Source: Blastocladiella emersonii ATCC 22665 (Eukaryota > Fungi > Blastocladiomycota). From it: DNA of 64,000 bases. The DNA lies in the NCBI GenBank assembly GCA_025594325.1, contig JANHCV010000002.1:1302001-1366000 (forward strand), in the 5' to 3' direction. A model generated the notes under the pieces. It had not been told where the DNA came from, ran no database searches, and worked only from the letters and a program-made list of their open reading frames with translations. The translations under genes were made by a program, and so were the position numbers. Shown here one piece after another: positions 6,703 to 57,264 of this stretch (its first letter is position 1; each line of letters starts with the position of its first letter).

Positions 6703-7032
6703 ATGCTCGCCAACGTCTTCCGCACCGCCATCGTATGTCGTGGCACTCGGGCCCATGACACCGAGCAGCTGCGACAGTTCGCTCACGCTGCGACCATGAC
6801 CGCCGTCTAGTCGTCGACCAAGGCCACCTACGTCGCCCCGTCGTCGGCGCTGTTCGCGCGCGACATCCTGGCCGACATCGCCGTGGCGGAGCTGCGCGCC
6901 TTCAAGCCCGCCGCCGCCGAGGTCACGGACCCCGTGCTGCTCAAGAAGTTCACGCCCCCGACCCCGCCGCCCACGGCCAAGGCCACCGAGGTCACCAAGG
7001 AGGAGCTCGAGGCCTACGCCAAGGGCAACTAA
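6703..7032 (+). CDS. ATP14: Mitochondrial F1Fo ATP synthase subunit h; intron 6733-6810
   Basis: MLANVFRTAI|SSTKATY...DILADIAVAELRAFKP...LLKKFTPPTPP...EELEAYAKGN* after splicing GTATGT...TAG; resembles the fungal subunit h pattern D..QDLYLRELKAYKP...F..P..P. Confidence 0.72.
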
Positions 7033-7226
7033 AGCGTCGTCCGACGTGTGTGTGTGTCTTGCTCCCCCCCCCCCACCATCCCTCTCTCCAACCCGCCCCC
7101 CGATTACGATGATACATATCTCTACCTCTCTACCCCGACCTGCGCGCGCTAATCCGATGAGGGCGAGAAGAAAGTCTAAGATACTATTGCTACACTTTTT
7201 GCTGCTGTTGCTGTTACTGCTGCTGC

Positions 7227-9749
7227 TCACGACTCGGCCCCCGTCGCCGCGGCCATGGCCAGCGACCCCTGCTGCTGCTCGGCAAACGACGACGACAGCG
7301 AGTCGAGCTCGCGGAGCGCGCGGTCGAGCTCGGCGTGGAACGGTTCCTTTGGCCGCGGCCCTGCTGATCCCGGCGCACCGCCGACATTGGGTGGACTCGT
7401 GTTACTCTCGCCCCGCGGCGGCGGTGGCGCCGACCCGACGACCTCGGGCGTCGGCGGCAGCTGCGCCGTGGGCGCCGACGCCATGAGCGCGGCCGCCGGG
7501 TGCCGCGGGAGCGTCGTGGCCGGCGGCGTGCCGGGCCCCGGCGGGATCATGAGCGCGCTGCCGTTGGCCGCCAGTGTCGCGGGGTCGAGGTAGAACTGCG
7601 GCCGCTTCGTCTGCGCAACCGCGGGAGGTGATGGCGGTGGCGGGAGACCAGGCGAGACCGCGCCCGCCATCGCAACCGCCGCTGCAGCCATAGCCGCGGC
7701 CGACCCATCGTCGTCGTGTCCCACCACGGGCGCGGCGTACACCATCTCGGACCCCTGGTTGCTCATATTGCTCGTGGCGCTGGCGCCGCTGGCGAGGACC
7801 ACGGTATCGGGCGGCGATGGCGGCTGGCCGGGCGGGAGGCTGCCGCGGCGGCGGAGCCCGCCGGCGCCCGCGAGCGCGGCGGCCATGGGCAGCAGCGGCG
7901 CGGACGGCGGGCCGAGCGGGACCCCCGCGGCCTGCGCGGCCACCGTGTCAATGACCACCGACTCGCGCGTGCGCCACCGCCGCTCGCGGACGACTTCGGA
8001 CTCGCTCTCGTACCCGCGGTCGTCGCCGCCGGTTGGGGTCGCGGGCAGCGCGTGTGAGGGGGCCGCGGTTGTGGGTGACGGGATCGCGGCGAGGCGCTGT
8101 GCGGTGCGTGATGGGGAAGGGACACCGCCGCCGTTCGGGACCACGGCGCGCGGCGGCTGGCTCGACATGCCGGGGACACGCGGCGGGGGTGGATCGTGCG
8201 TCGCTGCCGCGGCTGCTGGTGGCCGCGGCGACGGCGAGCTGGACGGCGACGGCGTAGCGGCCTGGTCGCTGCCGTGCACCGCGTGGAGCTTGCCGGGCTC
8301 GTCGGCGAGCATCTCGTCGTCGTCATCGTCTAGCCGGCCGCCTCCGCCGCCGACGGTGCGAAACGACCGCCCACTCGTCCCGGCGCCGCCCATGGACCGC
8401 GTGGGCATGCGCTCGCTGGCGGCGTGCGGGTACGCGTCGCGGCGCGGGAGGACGGGCGACGTGTTGAAGGCGAGGTCGGCCGCGTCCGAGAGCGAGCGGC
8501 GCTTGCGGCCCGAGGAGCCCGCGGATCGGCGCGATGCCGCGCGCCCGCTGGCGTTGTTGGCGGCGGACGTGGACGTGTTGAAGAAGCGCAGGTTGAACCA
8601 CCGCCGCTGCTCGCGCTCCTTGCTGTCCTTGTCCTTTTGCCGGCGCGACGACGACGAGGACGCCGCGGGCGCGTACTCGGACGGGAGCTGCGTCACGTCC
8701 GGCGCGCGGTCGCGCGACGGGAACTCCTCGGGCTGCGTCGCCGGGTGCTGGTTCCGGGACCGGCTGCGCCCGTGCGGCTGCGACTTGTACTGGCGCGCCG
8801 CGTCGGGCGCATCGGGCTGCTGCGGGTACTGCTGCGCGTACTGGTGCTGCGGGTGCGCGCCGGTTCGGTACGGGCGGTCGGACGCGGGGCCCTGCGGGTA
8901 CCCGTTGGGCCCGGGCTGTGGCGCCTGCTGCTGCTGGTGCTGCGGGTGGCCGCTGTACTGGTGGTCGCGGATGTAGTCGCCCGAGGGCCGCGCGACGCCC
9001 AGATTGCTCTGGGACGCCGTGGACCCGGGCGCGGCGTTGGTGCCGTTCCCGAGCAGGACCTGCGAGTGGAACGCCGGGTCGTGGGCGCGGTGCGCGCGCA
9101 TGTAGTCAAAGGGGAGGAACTCGGACTCAATGATGCGCATCTCGCGCGACTGCGAGCTCGGGTCCTTTTTGCGCGGCTTGGCGTGCAGCGGGTTCTCCTC
9201 GAGGAGGATCTCCTCGAGCTCGTAGCGGGCGTCGAAGTTGAGCTTGCGGTCGTCGGGGACAAAGGGCGGCTCGATCTCCTTTTGCTGCAGCAGGTCCCAG
9301 TCGATGCGCTTGAAGGCCGAGTGCGCCATGAGGTCGGCGTGACCCGCGCCCGCGATGCCGAGCCGCTCGCGCGGGTCGCGCTGCAGGAAGCCCTCGAGCA
9401 GCGACCGCATCCGGCGCGACATTTCCTCCGAGTAGGTGATGGGCTGCGTCTTGACCTTGTAGACGAGCTTGTCGACGCGCGACGCGGCGAAGGGGCGCTA
9501 CACGAAGGCGAGTCAGTCACGATGTCAAGGTTCCGCTGTTGGCGGGAGAAGGCGTACCTCGCCGTGGAGGCACTCCCACAAGACGATGCCGAGTGACCAC
9601 CAGTCGACGGCCTCCGAGTAGCCGACGTTGCCGTAGACCTCGGGGGCCATGTAGCCCTGGGTGCCCGTCTCGCTGGTGACCTTCTTGCCGGGCTCGAGGA
9701 TGGTGGCGCAGTTGAAGTCAGTCAGGTGGGCGTGGCCGTCGCCGTCGAG

Positions 9750-9781
<32 letters not shown>

Positions 9782-10328
9782 TGACGCGGCGCGAGTGCAG
9801 GTACATGAGGGCGGCGGCGAGCTCGGCAGCGTAGAAGACGGCCATGCGCTCGGTGAACTTGCCCATGCGGTTGATGTGGAAGCGCAGGTCGCCGCCGAGC
9901 ATGAGGTCGAGGACCATGAACTAGACGGTGCGATCCTTGGGGTGAGCGGGCGAGGTCGGAGAGGCGAAGCAGAGCGCGTACCATGTTCTCGTCGTCCTGG
10001 AAGGCGAAGCGCAGGTTGCAGATGGTCGGGAACGAAATGTTCTCGAGCAGGTTGCGCTCGCGGATGATGTTGCGGTAGGCGCGCTTCTTGATGCACTGGT
10101 CCTTGTTGATGTACTTGAGCGCGTACAGCTTCTTGGTGTCGCGCTTGACGACGACCTTGACCTTGCCGAAGGCGCCGCGGCCAATGGACCGGCCGAGCTT
10201 GAAGTGTCGCAAGTCGACTAGAGCGACAATGGTGTTAGGTTCCCCCGGCGTCGCGGCAGGATGATGGAGGAGATGGAGCAAGTACCCGGCGCATTGGCGT
10301 CGTAGTCGGAACTCCACTGGCCTCCCAT
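7227..10328 (-). CDS. AGC Ser/Thr kinase, STK32/YANK-like, with long disordered C-tail; introns 10218-10285, 9921-9981, 9498-9557
   Basis: IGRGAFGKV, YALKYINK, HRDIKPDNILLD, LTDFN, GTQGYMAPE, DWWSLG motifs and AGC C-terminal EPPFVP; three GT-AG introns restore frame; N-terminal MGGQWS. Confidence 0.88.
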
Positions 10329-11160
10329 GATGGTGGCGGGGGCGGGGGCGAGGCACGGAGCCGCTCAGACAGTTGATACAGGTGCTGACGATGGACGGCC
10401 GAGCAACGAGATTGCGGAAATGGGCGGCGGGTGCTGAGCAGGCAGCGTAATGGACAGCTGCTGCGCTCAACTCGGAGCAGCTCGGTTCGTCTCGTCTATG
10501 CGGCGGCGGCGGCAGCGGGTCCTCGCAGGGGACCGACGGCTGAGTGTGTGGGCAGCGTGCAACGGGTGCCGGTTGAAAGTGCAGGGAGAGAAGAAGAGAG
10601 CGAGCAGGTGGCGGGGGGTGGGTGGCACACGGGGGGCGAGCGAGCCTGGGCAAATGCGGCGTCGACTCCGCCACAGCGCGCAAGTAATTTCGGTTCCGGG
10701 GCCAACCTAGCACCGAGCTACGTTGTAGGGGTGCCGTTGCAACAAGTCGTATTCTCCGGGCAGAGGAGGGGCGCACTCCGTGAAAGCGGGGGCGGCGTCG
10801 GCAGCCTGGTCCGCAGCCGGCGCGGTCCCCCCACGCCGCGTCCAAAAATGGCGATCGGCGGGCGGCTGCCACGCGCATCATGGCGTCACCGCGGGCCGCG
10901 GGCCAGGCGTAGTCGCCGGCCGAATCGTTTCAGCACCTTGTCATCGCCTGCGCGGCCTATTCCCGGGCACGCCGGGGTGATCGGTGTGCTGATTGCACCG
11001 TCGAGATCGCGCAGCAACCGGTCAGGTGAACGCACCTGACGCGAGACGCGCTGCTGCTCAGCCTGCGCCACACTCGCACGCACGCTGGCCGACGCGATTT
11101 GCCGTTCGCTGATCGTGACGCACGCGCACACGCACGCACGACGATCGTGTACCCCAAAAC

Positions 11161-40876: not shown

Positions 40877-42274
40877 ATGGAAACGAATGAACTGCCACCG
40901 AGGGCGGCACCACACTTGCCGCTCGAGCTCATCGACGCTACCCTGGCGCAGTGCATCCGCGAAGAGCGTGACGACGACACCGAGGACGACCACGCTTCTT
41001 ACTTGCGACCCTACCTTGGTGTCGCGCCCGGTCTCGTCCTCGCACATCGTGCTGCTTTCTCGGCCTTTCCGCACGCGGATCTCGAGGCCGCAACGCGGTC
41101 GGGTCGGCTTGACGTCCTGAACATGTGGGCGAGCCTCGACGCCGTCTTGCGGGCCAGCATTCTCAGCTGGACCAGGACATCGCGCATCTTCGAGTGTGCG
41201 AGCCGAAGCGGGAACCCCGACGTGCTGAACTTTTGGGTGGACGCGCACCGCCGGCTCGGGATCCCGATCCAGTACACGCGTCACGCACTCGACTTTGCAG
41301 CAGACTCGCTCCTGTCGGAATCTCGTCCGGGCTCGCTCGTGCAAACTGCCGAGGACGCAACTCTTGCGGTCCTGGACTGGTGGGTCGCCCGCCACGTCGA
41401 GGACCCGGCCAGCTTCCCGGACCTACCGCACACCAACGCTCCGGCAGACCGCGCCTCGCGACACGGCCACGCTCGCGTGCTTGACTGGTGGCTCTCGTTC
41501 ACTCAATCCCGCGGACTCGAGTTCCAGTACTCTTCAGCTGCGGTCGACTTGGCTGCAAAAAACGGTCACCTCCACGTCCTCGAGTGGTGGCGCAAGCACG
41601 TCAGCACGGGAACGCTCAAGCTTGCGTCTCACTCGTCCATTAAAAACTTGACAAAAGCGGGCCGCACCGACTTGCTCGACTGGTGGGTGCACACGACCCA
41701 GTGGCCGATCCCCAAGTTGGCTGCGGGTGTTGCCATCGGTGAAGCGGGTCAAGTCGAGGTCTTGGGTTGGTGGTGGAACCACGCGCCTGCAGTTGTAGCG
41801 CACCAATACGAACCTTTGCTGACCCCGGCGCAAGCGTTCCCGCTGCTTCCGTACCGGGCACGAAGCGTGGACCAAGCGTCGATCCGCGGCGACTTTCCCG
41901 TACTTGATTGGTGGCTCGCTCGCGCCGCAGAGTATGCCATGCCGCCCGCCGACTTAATCCGCTACTCGTCGCTCGCCGTTGACCGCGCGCCGTCCGTCGC
42001 CGTGCTCAAGTTGTGGAAGGCGAGTGGGCTTCCGCTACTTCGCACGCACGATTGCCTCCTGTACGCAAGTAAAGGTGGCCGGATCGACTTGCTCGAGTGG
42101 CATCTCAATGGGCCAGGAGCCCACCTGCCCACGCAAGACCGCCGCACTGAACAGCCGATCCAGACGCCAATTAGGCCAGCGGCGGGCGTGATTGACACGG
42201 CGGGGAACCCAGAAACCGCGGCGTGGTGGACCGCGTACTGCCAGAAACGCTTCCAGGACTCGTTGTTGCGATAA
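40877..42274 (+). CDS. F-box-like N-terminus (LPLELID) + degenerate ankyrin-like 'VL[DE]WW' repeat protein, intronless
   Basis: ATG 40877; repeats such as ASRHGHARVLDWW, AAKNGHLHVLEWW, ASKGGRIDLLEW; codon usage visibly less GC3-biased than flanking housekeeping genes. Confidence 0.72.
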   Translation: METNELPPRAAPHLPLELIDATLAQCIREERDDDTEDDHASYLRPYLGVAPGLVLAHRAAFSAFPHADLEAATRSGRLDVLNMWASLDAVLRASILSWTRTSRIFECASRSGNPDVLNFWVDAHRRLGIPIQYTRHALDFAADSLLSESRPGSLVQTAEDATLAVLDWWVARHVEDPASFPDLPHTNAPADRASRHGHARVLDWWLSFTQSRGLEFQYSSAAVDLAAKNGHLHVLEWWRKHVSTGTLKLASHSSIKNLTKAGRTDLLDWWVHTTQWPIPKLAAGVAIGEAGQVEVLGWWWNHAPAVVAHQYEPLLTPAQAFPLLPYRARSVDQASIRGDFPVLDWWLARAAEYAMPPADLIRYSSLAVDRAPSVAVLKLWKASGLPLLRTHDCLLYASKGGRIDLLEWHLNGPGAHLPTQDRRTEQPIQTPIRPAAGVIDTAGNPETAAWWTAYCQKRFQDSLLR

Positions 42275-53863: not shown

Positions 53864-54693
53864 TCGAGGCGGGCATCACCGCTGTCGCCGACTCCAGTGA
53901 CTTTCCGTGGGCCATGGAAGAAAAGGTTGAGTCTCTCTCCTCTGACGACTGTTGATGATTGAGCTGTATGTTTTATTTGGAACGATATACTCTACGAGTC
54001 GCGTGCGAGAGGCAATGAAGCGCGATGCGCCACAGTCAGCTGATGAACGCTGACGCCACTCAGCACGTTCACATCCCCTTGACCCGGCAGCTCGTTCGCC
54101 CGACTCTGACCCAGTATCGCAAAATGAAGCTCATGAAGACATCAGCACTGGGCGCAACGCACTCGGCGCGCGTCAGCCTACCGCTTGAGATCATTGACAA
54201 CATCCTGGCGCGGTGCATTGGGCGCGTTCGCAAGTCCGGCGCCCAAGGCCCGCGCGCCTGTGCCCTTTTGCCGTACCTTCGCGTCGTCCGCGGACTCGAC
54301 CTTGCTCTTCGTGCGTCATTTGACGCATTTCCTCACACGCAGCTCTTGGCGGCTACGCAAAAGGGTCGGATGGATGTTCTCAAACTCTGGGCCAAGATCA
54401 ACCCGCGAACATGCCCGTTTTGAGAGGCCGACGCGTGCAAACTTGTTAACCAGGCCAGCTGCAGCGGCAATGTCGACGTACTTCAGTGGTGGTTTGACAT
54501 GTGGCGCAGGTGGCAGCACCTTGTACCTTGCTTCAAATTTGACCAGAATGCAATCGACCGCATCTGCCACCACTTCCTCATCTCGTCGGTGCCGCTCACC
54601 GAGGTGACCGATCCAAAGCACGCTTCCACATTGTCGCAAGCCGAAGATTCGATTTTGTCCGTCCTTGCTTGGTGGGCCGATCATCTTGACCAC

Positions 54694-54879
54694 TGTCACG
54701 GTTCAGTGATCCGACGGCTCGGGCTGGTGGCGCGGGCTGGTGGCGCAGTCCCTCATAAGCCGAGCGTTGCCCTCGCTCTCCCTCTCTCTTGTCATTCGTG
54801 ATACAATCCTTCATTATCCGGCTAGTCATTCCTCGTGGCACAAGACCCTCCCCCTCGGCACCTTACACTTTGTATCACC
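54694..54879 (+). repeat. Left terminal inverted repeat (186 bp)
   Basis: Exact reverse complement of 56043-56228; contains 13-bp tandem GGGCTGGTGGCGC x2 (54721-54746). Confidence 0.95.
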
Positions 54880-54921
54880 GTAAAACCCCCTCCGAGCGGT
54901 GATTTCTTCCACGACGGCAAA

Positions 54922-55998
54922 ATGATAACGCTGGCACAGTTCCTCGAAAAGCTGGCGACGTTTGACGTTGCGGCCATTGTCCCCGAGTACCAGCTCGCGC
55001 CGTGGCGCGACCTGGTCATGCCGTACGAGGACAAAGCCAAGCTCGTCTTCCTCGCGCTCAACGTCGCCAGCGACTACTGGCAACTGGGCGTGTCGACCGA
55101 GGCCCGCGCGGTCGCGGCCAAGCGGCGCGCCGAGACGGCGGAGCGCCGCGCGTATGCGCTCGAGGTCGAGCTGCGGCAGACGCAGCAGAGCCAGCCGCTC
55201 AACGGTATCCTGCAGGGCGAGCTCGACAGCATCCAGGTCAGCAGCGCGCGCGGGCCGGGCGTGGGCGTTGATGGCTTCACGCCGGCCGCGATGCACGCGC
55301 TGATGCGCATGAATTCGGTTGACGGCGTCAACTTCAAGGTCAAGAGCGCCATCACGCAGTACGAGAGCATCCTCCAGCTCACGTTCAACGTCCCGGAGAA
55401 GTTCAAGATTGCGCACTTCCACGGCAAGCTGACGGGCAAGGTGCTCGAGGCCGTGGAGCTGGCGATGGCCGGGTCCAAGTTTGAGGACTACGGCTCGTTC
55501 AACGCCTACATCTCCCTCGTCAAGTCAACGCAGCCGGCCGAGAAGTCGGAGACCGAGTACGCGCACGAGCTCAAGAACCTCAAGTACGTGCGCGGCGCCA
55601 TGCCGGCGCGCGATTTCGTCTCCAAGTTCCGCCAGACCGCGTCCGGTGCAGGCTACCGCGCGCTCAGCGAGCTGGCGATGCAGTTCTACCTGGTGGTCAC
55701 GGCCGGCAACTCGCCGCTGGCCGCGGACGTGGCCTTCGCCTCGCTGCGCAAGGGCTACCGTTTCGACAAGATGGTCGAGCACTTCCTGGTGCACGAGGGC
55801 GGGGCGACGGGCGTCGCGGCTGAGCTCGTCCCGGACCCAGACGCCATGGACGTTGGCGCGATTCGGCAGTGGGCGGCGGCGCACCAGGGCCGCGCCCTCA
55901 CTGACATCAAGTGCTACAACTGCAAGGGCTACGGCCACAAGGCGGCTGATTGCCCGTCGCCCCCGCGCTCGTCGTCGGGAAACGCCAGTCGGGCGTAG
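54922..55998 (+). CDS. gag: Ty3/gypsy-like Gag (capsid-like region + CCHC zinc knuckle)
   Basis: ATG 54922, 358 aa, intact; PDAMDVGAI motif followed by CYNCKGYGHKAADC (CX2CX4HX4C) and SGNA, the usual arrangement at the end of gypsy-type Gag. Confidence 0.82.
   Translation: MITLAQFLEKLATFDVAAIVPEYQLAPWRDLVMPYEDKAKLVFLALNVASDYWQLGVSTEARAVAAKRRAETAERRAYALEVELRQTQQSQPLNGILQGELDSIQVSSARGPGVGVDGFTPAAMHALMRMNSVDGVNFKVKSAITQYESILQLTFNVPEKFKIAHFHGKLTGKVLEAVELAMAGSKFEDYGSFNAYISLVKSTQPAEKSETEYAHELKNLKYVRGAMPARDFVSKFRQTASGAGYRALSELAMQFYLVVTAGNSPLAADVAFASLRKGYRFDKMVEHFLVHEGGATGVAAELVPDPDAMDVGAIRQWAAAHQGRALTDIKCYNCKGYGHKAADCPSPPRSSSGNASRA
55977..55983 (+). other. Candidate -1 ribosomal frameshift slippery heptamer G GGA AAC
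   Basis: X XXY YYZ heptamer in the correct phase just after the zinc knuckle; the -1 frame closes at TGA 56094-56096. Confidence 0.6.
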
Positions 55999-56042
55999 CG
56001 GAGCAGGCCGCGACGTCCTCGAAGCCAAAACCTGCGGATTTG

Positions 56043-56228
56043 GGTGATACAAAGTGTAAGGTGCCGAGGGGGAGGGTCTTGTGCCACGAGGAATGACTAG
56101 CCGGATAATGAAGGATTGTATCACGAATGACAAGAGAGAGGGAGAGCGAGGGCAACGCTCGGCTTATGAGGGACTGCGCCACCAGCCCGCGCCACCAGCC
56201 CGAGCCGTCGGATCACTGAACCGTGACA
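56043..56228 (-). repeat. Right terminal inverted repeat (186 bp)
   Basis: Exact reverse complement of 54694-54879. Confidence 0.95.
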
Positions 56229-57264
56229 ACCACGATCCAGCGGCATTCCCGAGCCTCGCGTCCACCCATCTCCTAGTCGCCCACGCCTCAACCTTCGGCC
56301 TCACGCGTGTTCTCGACTTCTGGGTGAACTTCACGCACACGCGGGGTCTCAAGTTCAAGTTCACTGCTGGTGCAATCGAGATCGCTGCGAGGTACAGCAA
56401 CACTGCAATCCTTGATTGGTGGCGCAGCTTTTTCGCAACGCATCCCAGCGATCTCGTCCTAGGCTTGGCGCTAGTGCAAGCAAGCGATGCGGAACATATT
56501 CAAGTTCTCAATTGGTGGCTCGACGTGGCCAAATGGCCAGTACCGCATGGCCTAGCGCGCGATGCCATCAAGTCAGCGCATGAGGGTGGTCGGACCGCTT
56601 CGCTTCGTTGGTGGATACGCCAGTCTCTGCGCCTTGCAGGGGGCCAACTCGGCGTCGCACATAGCCCCCAAACTCAGGCCACATTGCGCTCCTAGTTCGC
56701 CGAACTCAGTCTGGACCGGGTGTCCATCAATGGCATCATTCCAACGCTCGAGTTTTGGCGCAAAAGCTTGATGGAGCGCAGGAAATCGAATCCAGCTGCG
56801 CGGCAATTAGTCAAATACACGTCGGACGCGATTGACGGGGCCAAGTCAGTGCAAGTGCTCGAATGGTGGCGCACCTCGGGCCTCCCTTTCAAGCGCACGA
56901 CGTGGTGCCTGTGGTCAGCTTCCGAGTGCAGCAGGATTGATGTCCTCAAGTGGCATCTCGAGGGCCCTGGTGCGTCGCTGCCAGTCAAGGATCGCGACGG
57001 CCGTACTCTGCGACGTCTCGATCCTGACCACGGTGACATGGACTGCGCGGGATCCGCCAGGTGCCTGGACTGGTGGCTCGCGTACTACAGCCGCCGCGGG
57101 GTTCCGCCCCGCTATTCGCTGGCCGCGCTCACCTATGCGCGCAAGCACCCCAACAAGGACGAAATCCTTGCCTGGTGGAGGGAGTCACGGTTGCAGAAGT
57201 ACGGGTCGTATCGCTATATTTGACGTTGTCAGGTCCGCCATTGTATTCCGATAATCGGGACCAA

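Follow-up and report, generated by a model that had tools for sequence, protein, structure and literature searches.

The window analyzed here is a stretch of 64,000 nt from Blastocladiella emersonii ATCC 22665 (GCA_025594325.1, contig JANHCV010000002.1, positions 1,302,001-1,366,000), and the element in question is a gag-bearing unit of 1535 bp within it. The unit starts with TGTCAC, ends with GTGACA, and carries ACCAC on either side (54689..54693 on the left and 56229..56233 on the right, both read directly). Its ends are formed by two inverted arms (54694-54879 and 56043-56228) of 186 nt each, which complement one another fully (100%) and are separated by 1163 nt; a search with the arm's initial 30 nt gives two occurrences in the window, where chance predicts 0. 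Between the arms lies one intact open reading frame (ORF) with an MDVG motif and a CCHC knuckle, and a check of the ORFs of the 1535 bp found none for pol, a transposase, or a tyrosine or other recombinase. An earlier sequence-only reading of the window had described this arrangement, including the identical arms, their termini, the 5-bp duplication, and the absence of any mobility enzyme from the unit, and both direct reading and arm comparison bear it out.

The unit interrupts an exon of a host gene (54025-57223). The upstream half of the exon (54424..54693, plus strand, from the ORF list and tblastn) is an open frame that reads ...AWWADHLDH at its end and stops exactly with the left duplication, and the downstream half (56234..56692, plus strand), starting DPAAFPSL..., continues in the same frame after 1540 nt are discounted. 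An uninterrupted paralog of the gene is present 13 kb upstream in the same window (41180..41773, plus strand), and in tblastn the two halves align to it at 41180-41401 and 41402-41773 with no gap. Judged by these flanks, the insertion is genuine and struck a host-gene exon. The interrupted gene is a member of a multi-copy family characterized by recurring ...L(D/N/E)WW... motifs, which has a weaker relative in one of the other loci compared below (L003, 769-1179); Pfam searches with the four host ORF pieces gave no match. The G+C content is 0.61-0.64 in 52-58 kb and 0.65-0.73 in the remaining window.

The relatives of the unit were sought among the loci with an annotated gag, of which there are 13 (the window copy and 12 others, L002-L013), all retrieved. 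In the 12 others, without exception, the arm sequence is present as a direct repeat. These siblings are elements of 5291 bp (5287 bp in one case) with direct long terminal repeats (LTRs) of 174 bp, ends of the form TGTCAC...CTTACA, and 5-bp duplications that are all perfect and all mutually different, so that direct LTRs, TG...CA ends, and a duplication within the 4-6-bp range occur together in every one of them. A purine-rich tract (GGAGGGGGAAGGGGAGATAG) stands directly before the 3' LTR in each full-length copy, and gag is followed, in the -1 frame relative to it, by a pol ORF of 1286 aa (7029-10889 in each of L002-L013). Pfam finds in the pol of L002 an aspartyl protease, RVT_1, RT_RNaseH, Integrase_H2C2, rve, SH3_Tf2-1, and Chromo; the domain order, protease, reverse transcriptase (RT), RNaseH, and integrase (IN) with a chromodomain after IN, is that of a chromovirus, and the best solved relative of pol is Ty3 Gag-Pol (E 4.6e-144). 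The full-length copies are 99.66-100% identical to L002 over their whole length. Gag is open in 13 of 13 copies and pol in 11 of 12, the exception being the copy that is 4 bp shorter (L004, 5773-11059), where a single deletion in pol breaks the frame. On this structure and domain content the family is an ordinary, very young Ty3/gypsy chromovirus, previously undescribed in B. emersonii. The 12 siblings resemble fungal Ty3/gypsy chromoviruses with a Tf1/Tf2-like domain content, sharing direct LTRs, a CCHC Gag, the order PR-RT-RNaseH-IN (PR, protease), a Tf2-1-type SH3 domain, and a C-terminal chromodomain.

Some further observations concern the same loci. The genome paper (PMC9730499) makes no mention of transposable elements, and in the deposited annotation the full-length copies have gag called as a gene, whereas the pol ORF of 1286 aa is uncalled in all 12. 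A solo LTR with its own duplication, GTCGG, is present at L006 2852-3025 (minus strand), 2.7 kb from an oppositely oriented full-length copy. Called genes near two of the elements (L002, 1-1431; L007, 11876-13077) have weak Pfam matches to families of viral type, Herpes_ori_bp (helicase-like) and the Pox_A32 ATPase (weak).

Comparison with the siblings resolves the parts of the window copy. Each 186-nt arm consists of the 174-bp LTR plus the 12 nt found after the 5' LTR. The 5' LTR (54694..54867, plus strand, TGTCAC...CTTACA), whose boundaries come from the comparison of 5' and 3' LTRs in the 12 loci, is followed by these 12 nt (CTTTGTATCACC; 54868..54879, plus strand), a 2-nt spacer with the primer-binding site (PBS) that is the same in 13 of 13 copies, and then by the intact gag (54922..55998, plus strand) and a remnant of the pol frame (55950..56046, plus strand) that retains the first ~30 codons of what in L002 is the ORF at 7029-10889. 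There the element turns back on itself, with an inverted copy of the 12 nt (56043..56054, minus strand) and an inverted LTR of 174 bp (56055..56228, minus strand; delimited by arm and sibling-LTR comparison) whose U3 end points outward (...GTGACA). Over element positions 1-1359, which cover the LTR, the leader, gag, and ~50 nt past the gag stop, the window copy has 99.1-99.4% identity to the family, and its LTRs are 100% identical to those of several full-length siblings. The ~3.8-kb rest of pol, together with the polypurine tract and the sense 3' LTR, is missing as one truncation event, and what is retained is a promoter-bearing LTR, the PBS, an intact gag, and a slippery site. Compared with an intact member of the family, or with fungal Ty3/gypsy (Metaviridae) chromoviruses generally, the second LTR is inverted instead of direct, and pol and the polypurine tract are absent. 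From these differences, the window copy is a defective derivative of the chromovirus family and not a canonical copy. Lacking both the polypurine tract and a sense 3' R, it would by the standard model undergo no further replication round and looks like a replicative dead end. Its private substitutions number five and are confined to gag, the arms having none; two of the five are amino-acid changes relative to the nearest sibling (L011). The copy is therefore about as young as its siblings, which agrees with the recent insertion that the sequence-only reading had proposed.

The same reading went further and held that the unit fits none of the known classes, being a non-autonomous hybrid family mobilized in trans. 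The comparison does not support this part. All 12 of the other gag copies are direct-LTR gypsy elements with pol, the inverted architecture is present once, and no further copies with this architecture and different 5-bp duplications are among the 13 loci, where the 12 siblings do differ in their duplications but have direct LTRs. A sole copy whose relatives are all ordinary direct-LTR gypsy elements was what the hypothesis of a new class had itself named as its refutation, and since this is what the 13 loci show, that hypothesis fails by its own criterion. On the sequences compared, the window unit is a curiosity of a known kind of element, not a new kind of mobile element.

Evidence on how such a copy could arise lies at its internal junction. 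Where the full-length copies read GGTGGTACAACG, the window copy has GGTGATACAAAG, which complements the post-LTR 12-mer exactly. The switch falls within a 4-nt perfect overlap (GGTG, the first 4 nt of the inverted 12 nt, common to the internal sequence) inside a 10/12 match to the complement of the PBS region, and GGTGGTACAACG is the sole site in the 5.3-kb element that is <=2 mismatches from that complement. At both mismatched positions of the 12-mer, the window copy carries the PBS version. Further, the inverted arm continues for 8-12 nt past the LTR with the nucleotides that follow the 5' LTR, not with the polypurine tract or flank that adjoins a 3' LTR. An LTR with 8-12 nt of post-5'-LTR sequence matches plus-strand strong-stop DNA in composition, and the retention of the PBS version of the 12-mer is as expected if strong-stop DNA was the primer. 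The junction sequence has one occurrence among the window and the retrieved sibling loci, and the inverted arm is found in 1 of 13 annotated gag copies.

We consider it probable that the window unit is a one-off defective copy, in which a mis-directed plus-strand transfer during reverse transcription gave a gag-only complementary DNA (cDNA) with two U3 ends that was then inserted by integrase into the host exon. The process would start from plus-strand strong-stop DNA, composed of the LTR and a copy of the PBS. The PBS tail of this molecule normally guides the second strand transfer (PMC6894440), and in Tf1 the PBS tail of the cDNA, which is single-stranded, seeks homologous sequences (PMC11042837). 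Here the 3' PBS tail would have annealed not to the minus-strand end but to the plus-sense sequence, ~50 nt beyond the gag stop, that resembles the PBS complement, and its extension back through gag to the 5' LTR, in an order of strand transfers that we infer, would yield a short cDNA of the form LTR-PBS-gag-PBS'-LTR' that keeps the primer's version of the 12-mer. Both termini of this cDNA would be U3 ends, and the family's integrase, if it accepted two such ends, would have inserted the molecule into the host-gene exon with a 5-bp duplication. The duplication is indeed flush with both U3 ends, which indicates that the family integrase inserted the window copy like any other copy; the suggestion of the sequence-only reading that a DDE integrase had acted on two identical ends is in this respect well founded, as the insertion has the hallmarks of such a reaction. 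A comparable history has been described for complex LTR elements of Triticeae, in which abnormal template switching was followed by integration with a duplication (PMC1950507). The likeness lies in an aberrant strand transfer, a non-canonical cDNA integrated as a unit, and one target-site duplication. The Triticeae cases, however, are large two-parent fusions with direct shared LTRs, whereas the window copy is short and truncated and has an inverted LTR.

Several points weigh against this reconstruction. The mechanism is deduced from a single end product, and full double-strandedness, whose route we can only infer, requires additional steps that left no trace. A 10/12 internal match to the PBS complement is found somewhere in 7.5% of shuffled internal sequences, and thus the site need not be functional. 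That the family integrase can use two U3 ends is an assumption based on what is generally known of retroviral integrases. The census was of loci with annotated gag, and rearranged copies that lack an annotated gag may exist. Finally, literature searches for exactly such an inverted-LTR product found no precedent; older retrovirology work reportedly includes defective unintegrated DNAs with inverted LTR-containing duplications, which we take as a lead only.

The same structure could instead have been produced after integration. In this alternative, a full-length copy inserted at ACCAC, and pol and the 3' LTR were lost through a subsequent error of replication or repair: a template switch at GGTG would have led to the opposite strand of the 5' LTR and PBS, the LTR would have been copied backwards, and a second switch would have returned synthesis to the right flank. 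The microhomology at the internal junction (4 nt perfect within the 10/12 match) suits such an error, the identity of the arms is likewise predicted, and the ACA common to the two LTR ends would formally allow a second switch at ...ACA|ACCAC. However, two coordinated switches are needed, of which the second must fall exactly on the LTR terminus and so mimic integrase-made ends flush with the duplication. Further, a fold-back primed internally should keep the internal 12-mer, yet the window copy has the PBS version at both differing positions. We therefore regard a rearrangement after integration as unlikely, and favor the mis-directed transfer before integration.

A second alternative is that the unit represents a distinct Gag-only class or family bounded by terminal inverted repeats, which an integrase acting in trans would move as a whole in the manner of Ginger elements. 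Ginger1 and Ginger2/TDD elements combine terminal inverted repeats, 40-270 bp long, with TGTNR termini and duplications of 4-5 bp (PMC2836005), and the window copy is formally like Ginger2/TDD in its inverted repeats, its TGTNR-type termini, and its 5-bp duplication; its gag, moreover, is intact. However, Ginger elements code for an integrase-like transposase, have no RT, and form families that share inverted ends, whereas the window unit has Gag only, is the sole copy of its architecture among the annotated gag loci, and has relatives with RT and direct LTRs. There is no transposase in the unit, every relative with the same ends has RT-RNaseH-IN between direct LTRs, no transposase-only partner was seen among the loci compared, and the arms are simply the family's LTR plus its PBS. 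The window copy is without the polypurine tract and the sense 3' R on which retrotransposition depends, and there is no sign of cut-and-paste movement. The combination of gag with inverted terminal repeats also recalls DIRS elements; those elements use a tyrosine recombinase and normally leave no target-site duplication, whereas the integrase of the family is of DDE type (rve), a tyrosine recombinase is not encoded, and 5-bp duplications are made. A separate class of this kind is, in our view, very improbable. A non-autonomous family of the LARD (large retrotransposon derivative), TRIM (terminal-repeat retrotransposon in miniature), or gag-only type was considered and rejected as well: such families keep direct LTRs, the PBS, and the polypurine tract and have multiple copies of one truncated architecture, whereas here the second LTR is inverted, the polypurine tract is gone, and a single one of the 13 loci examined has this structure.

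An assembly artefact, in which a chimeric or fold-back read made the inverted arm, has in its favor that a single assembly represents this strain in the collections, which leaves the locus with no independent confirmation. The assembly, however, was made from PacBio high-fidelity (HiFi) reads of ~10.5 kb at ~186x coverage and polished with Illumina data (PMC9730499), and with such reads at such depth, reads spanning 1.5 kb must be plentiful. A fold-back chimera would have inverted the flank too, whereas here one host exon runs on through both flanks without a change of orientation or frame, the 5-bp duplication is perfect, and a paralog is collinear across the site; we give this explanation very little credence. 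Still less can be said for a pair of opposite insertions, one nested in the other, with a deletion afterwards, to which we attach almost no weight: LTR elements are often nested, and L006 does have a solo LTR of the family, but the junction sequence contradicts this origin, as the arm does not stop at an LTR terminus on its inner side, running instead 8-12 nt into the PBS region to meet internal sequence at the homology patch, and there is no second duplication. Autointegration was rejected because its junctions are at LTR termini and its products are circles.

The ORF of the unit had been taken for a Ty3/gypsy-type Gag, and its position now supports this identification: the same ORF lies upstream of a chromovirus pol in all 12 full-length siblings, which is a stronger argument than any drawn from its fold. 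The protein has 358 aa from the ATG; a DAMDVGA motif stands shortly before its CCHC knuckle (zf-CCHC, PF00098, E 7.3e-6), which is the sole Pfam match. It is very divergent compared with Ty3/gypsy chromovirus Gag proteins, with no match to Retrotrans_gag in Pfam. A PDB sequence search returned knuckle-level matches only, and an exhaustive search of representative sequences added to such matches one full-domain relative, a protein of Catenaria anguillulae with 27% identity over 229 aa that shares the DPMDIGA...CxxCxxxGH region. A search of 5.8 billion proteins gave no match beyond the protein's own cluster, which comprises nine near-identical sequences corresponding to the 13 annotated genes, all from B. 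emersonii ATCC 22665. In an AlphaFold2 (AF2) model, residues 118-300 are all-helical with a mean pLDDT (predicted local distance difference test) of 72, and Foldseek searches with two AF2 models placed the Ty3 capsid, Arc, PNMA2, the C-terminal capsid domain (CA-CTD) of PEG10, Ty1 p22, and the HIV capsid at the top of both lists, none at E <0.1. A capsid-like fold is thus weakly indicated by the models.

Two features bear on the expression and replication of the family. The heptamer G GGA AAC, in the gag zero frame at 55977..55983 (plus strand; 7056-7062 in L002) and 15 nt before the gag stop, is a canonical -1 slippery sequence and, given the -1 frame of pol, a candidate site of -1 frameshifting into it; in the minimum-free-energy (MFE) fold a hairpin lies 7 nt downstream of the heptamer, although the fold is not significant against shuffles. 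As to priming, the PBS does not start with the TGG that is typical of elements primed by a transfer RNA (tRNA), and priming by a tRNA 3' end was set aside for this reason; a tRNA scan of the window found none. Instead, a 9-nt sequence within the LTR, GTGATACAA (54798..54806, plus strand), which lies 70 nt upstream of the LTR end, is the exact complement over all 9 nt of element positions 177-185 (54870-54878) and a candidate self-primer of Tf1 type. In the MFE fold computed for an RNA with an assumed start at 54798, these 9 nt are paired with the PBS; this leader fold is not better than those of shuffles. The concept of self-priming in Tf1-type elements has been described (PMC4600332), and the family is like Tf1 and Tj1 in that its PBS is not tRNA-like and is complementary to an LTR stretch with which the transcript could begin; a difference from Tf1 and Tj1 is that the complementarity here spans 9 nt. 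The lack of TGG and the complement within the LTR suggest a possible Tf1-like self-priming in a blastoclad chromovirus.

There is a slim chance that the locus is more than debris and acts on its 12 active-looking siblings, as a source of hairpin RNA or through a Gag-only interfering factor. If this were so, a transcript from the intact 5' LTR would encode full-length Gag, and its R-U5-PBS leader would fold against the inverted arm in a perfect double-stranded stem of ~80 bp. Natural counterparts are known for both roles, Mu killer being a source of hairpin RNA against MuDR in maize and p22 of Ty1 a Gag-only interfering factor. More remote still is the notion of an incipient Ginger-like element with inverted ends that are recognized by integrase.

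More generally, long perfect inverted repeats, TG/CA ends, and a target duplication can be the by-product of an ordinary LTR retrotransposon, and since units of this appearance can arise from ordinary elements, no new transposon class should be proposed from them without checking the relatives. In the window copy there is a natural record that accords with two events mostly studied in vitro, a mis-directed plus-strand transfer at a PBS look-alike and the integration of a cDNA with two U3 ends. The locus also reveals a very young chromovirus family in a model blastoclad fungus, with 12 full-length copies, 11 of which have open gag and pol.

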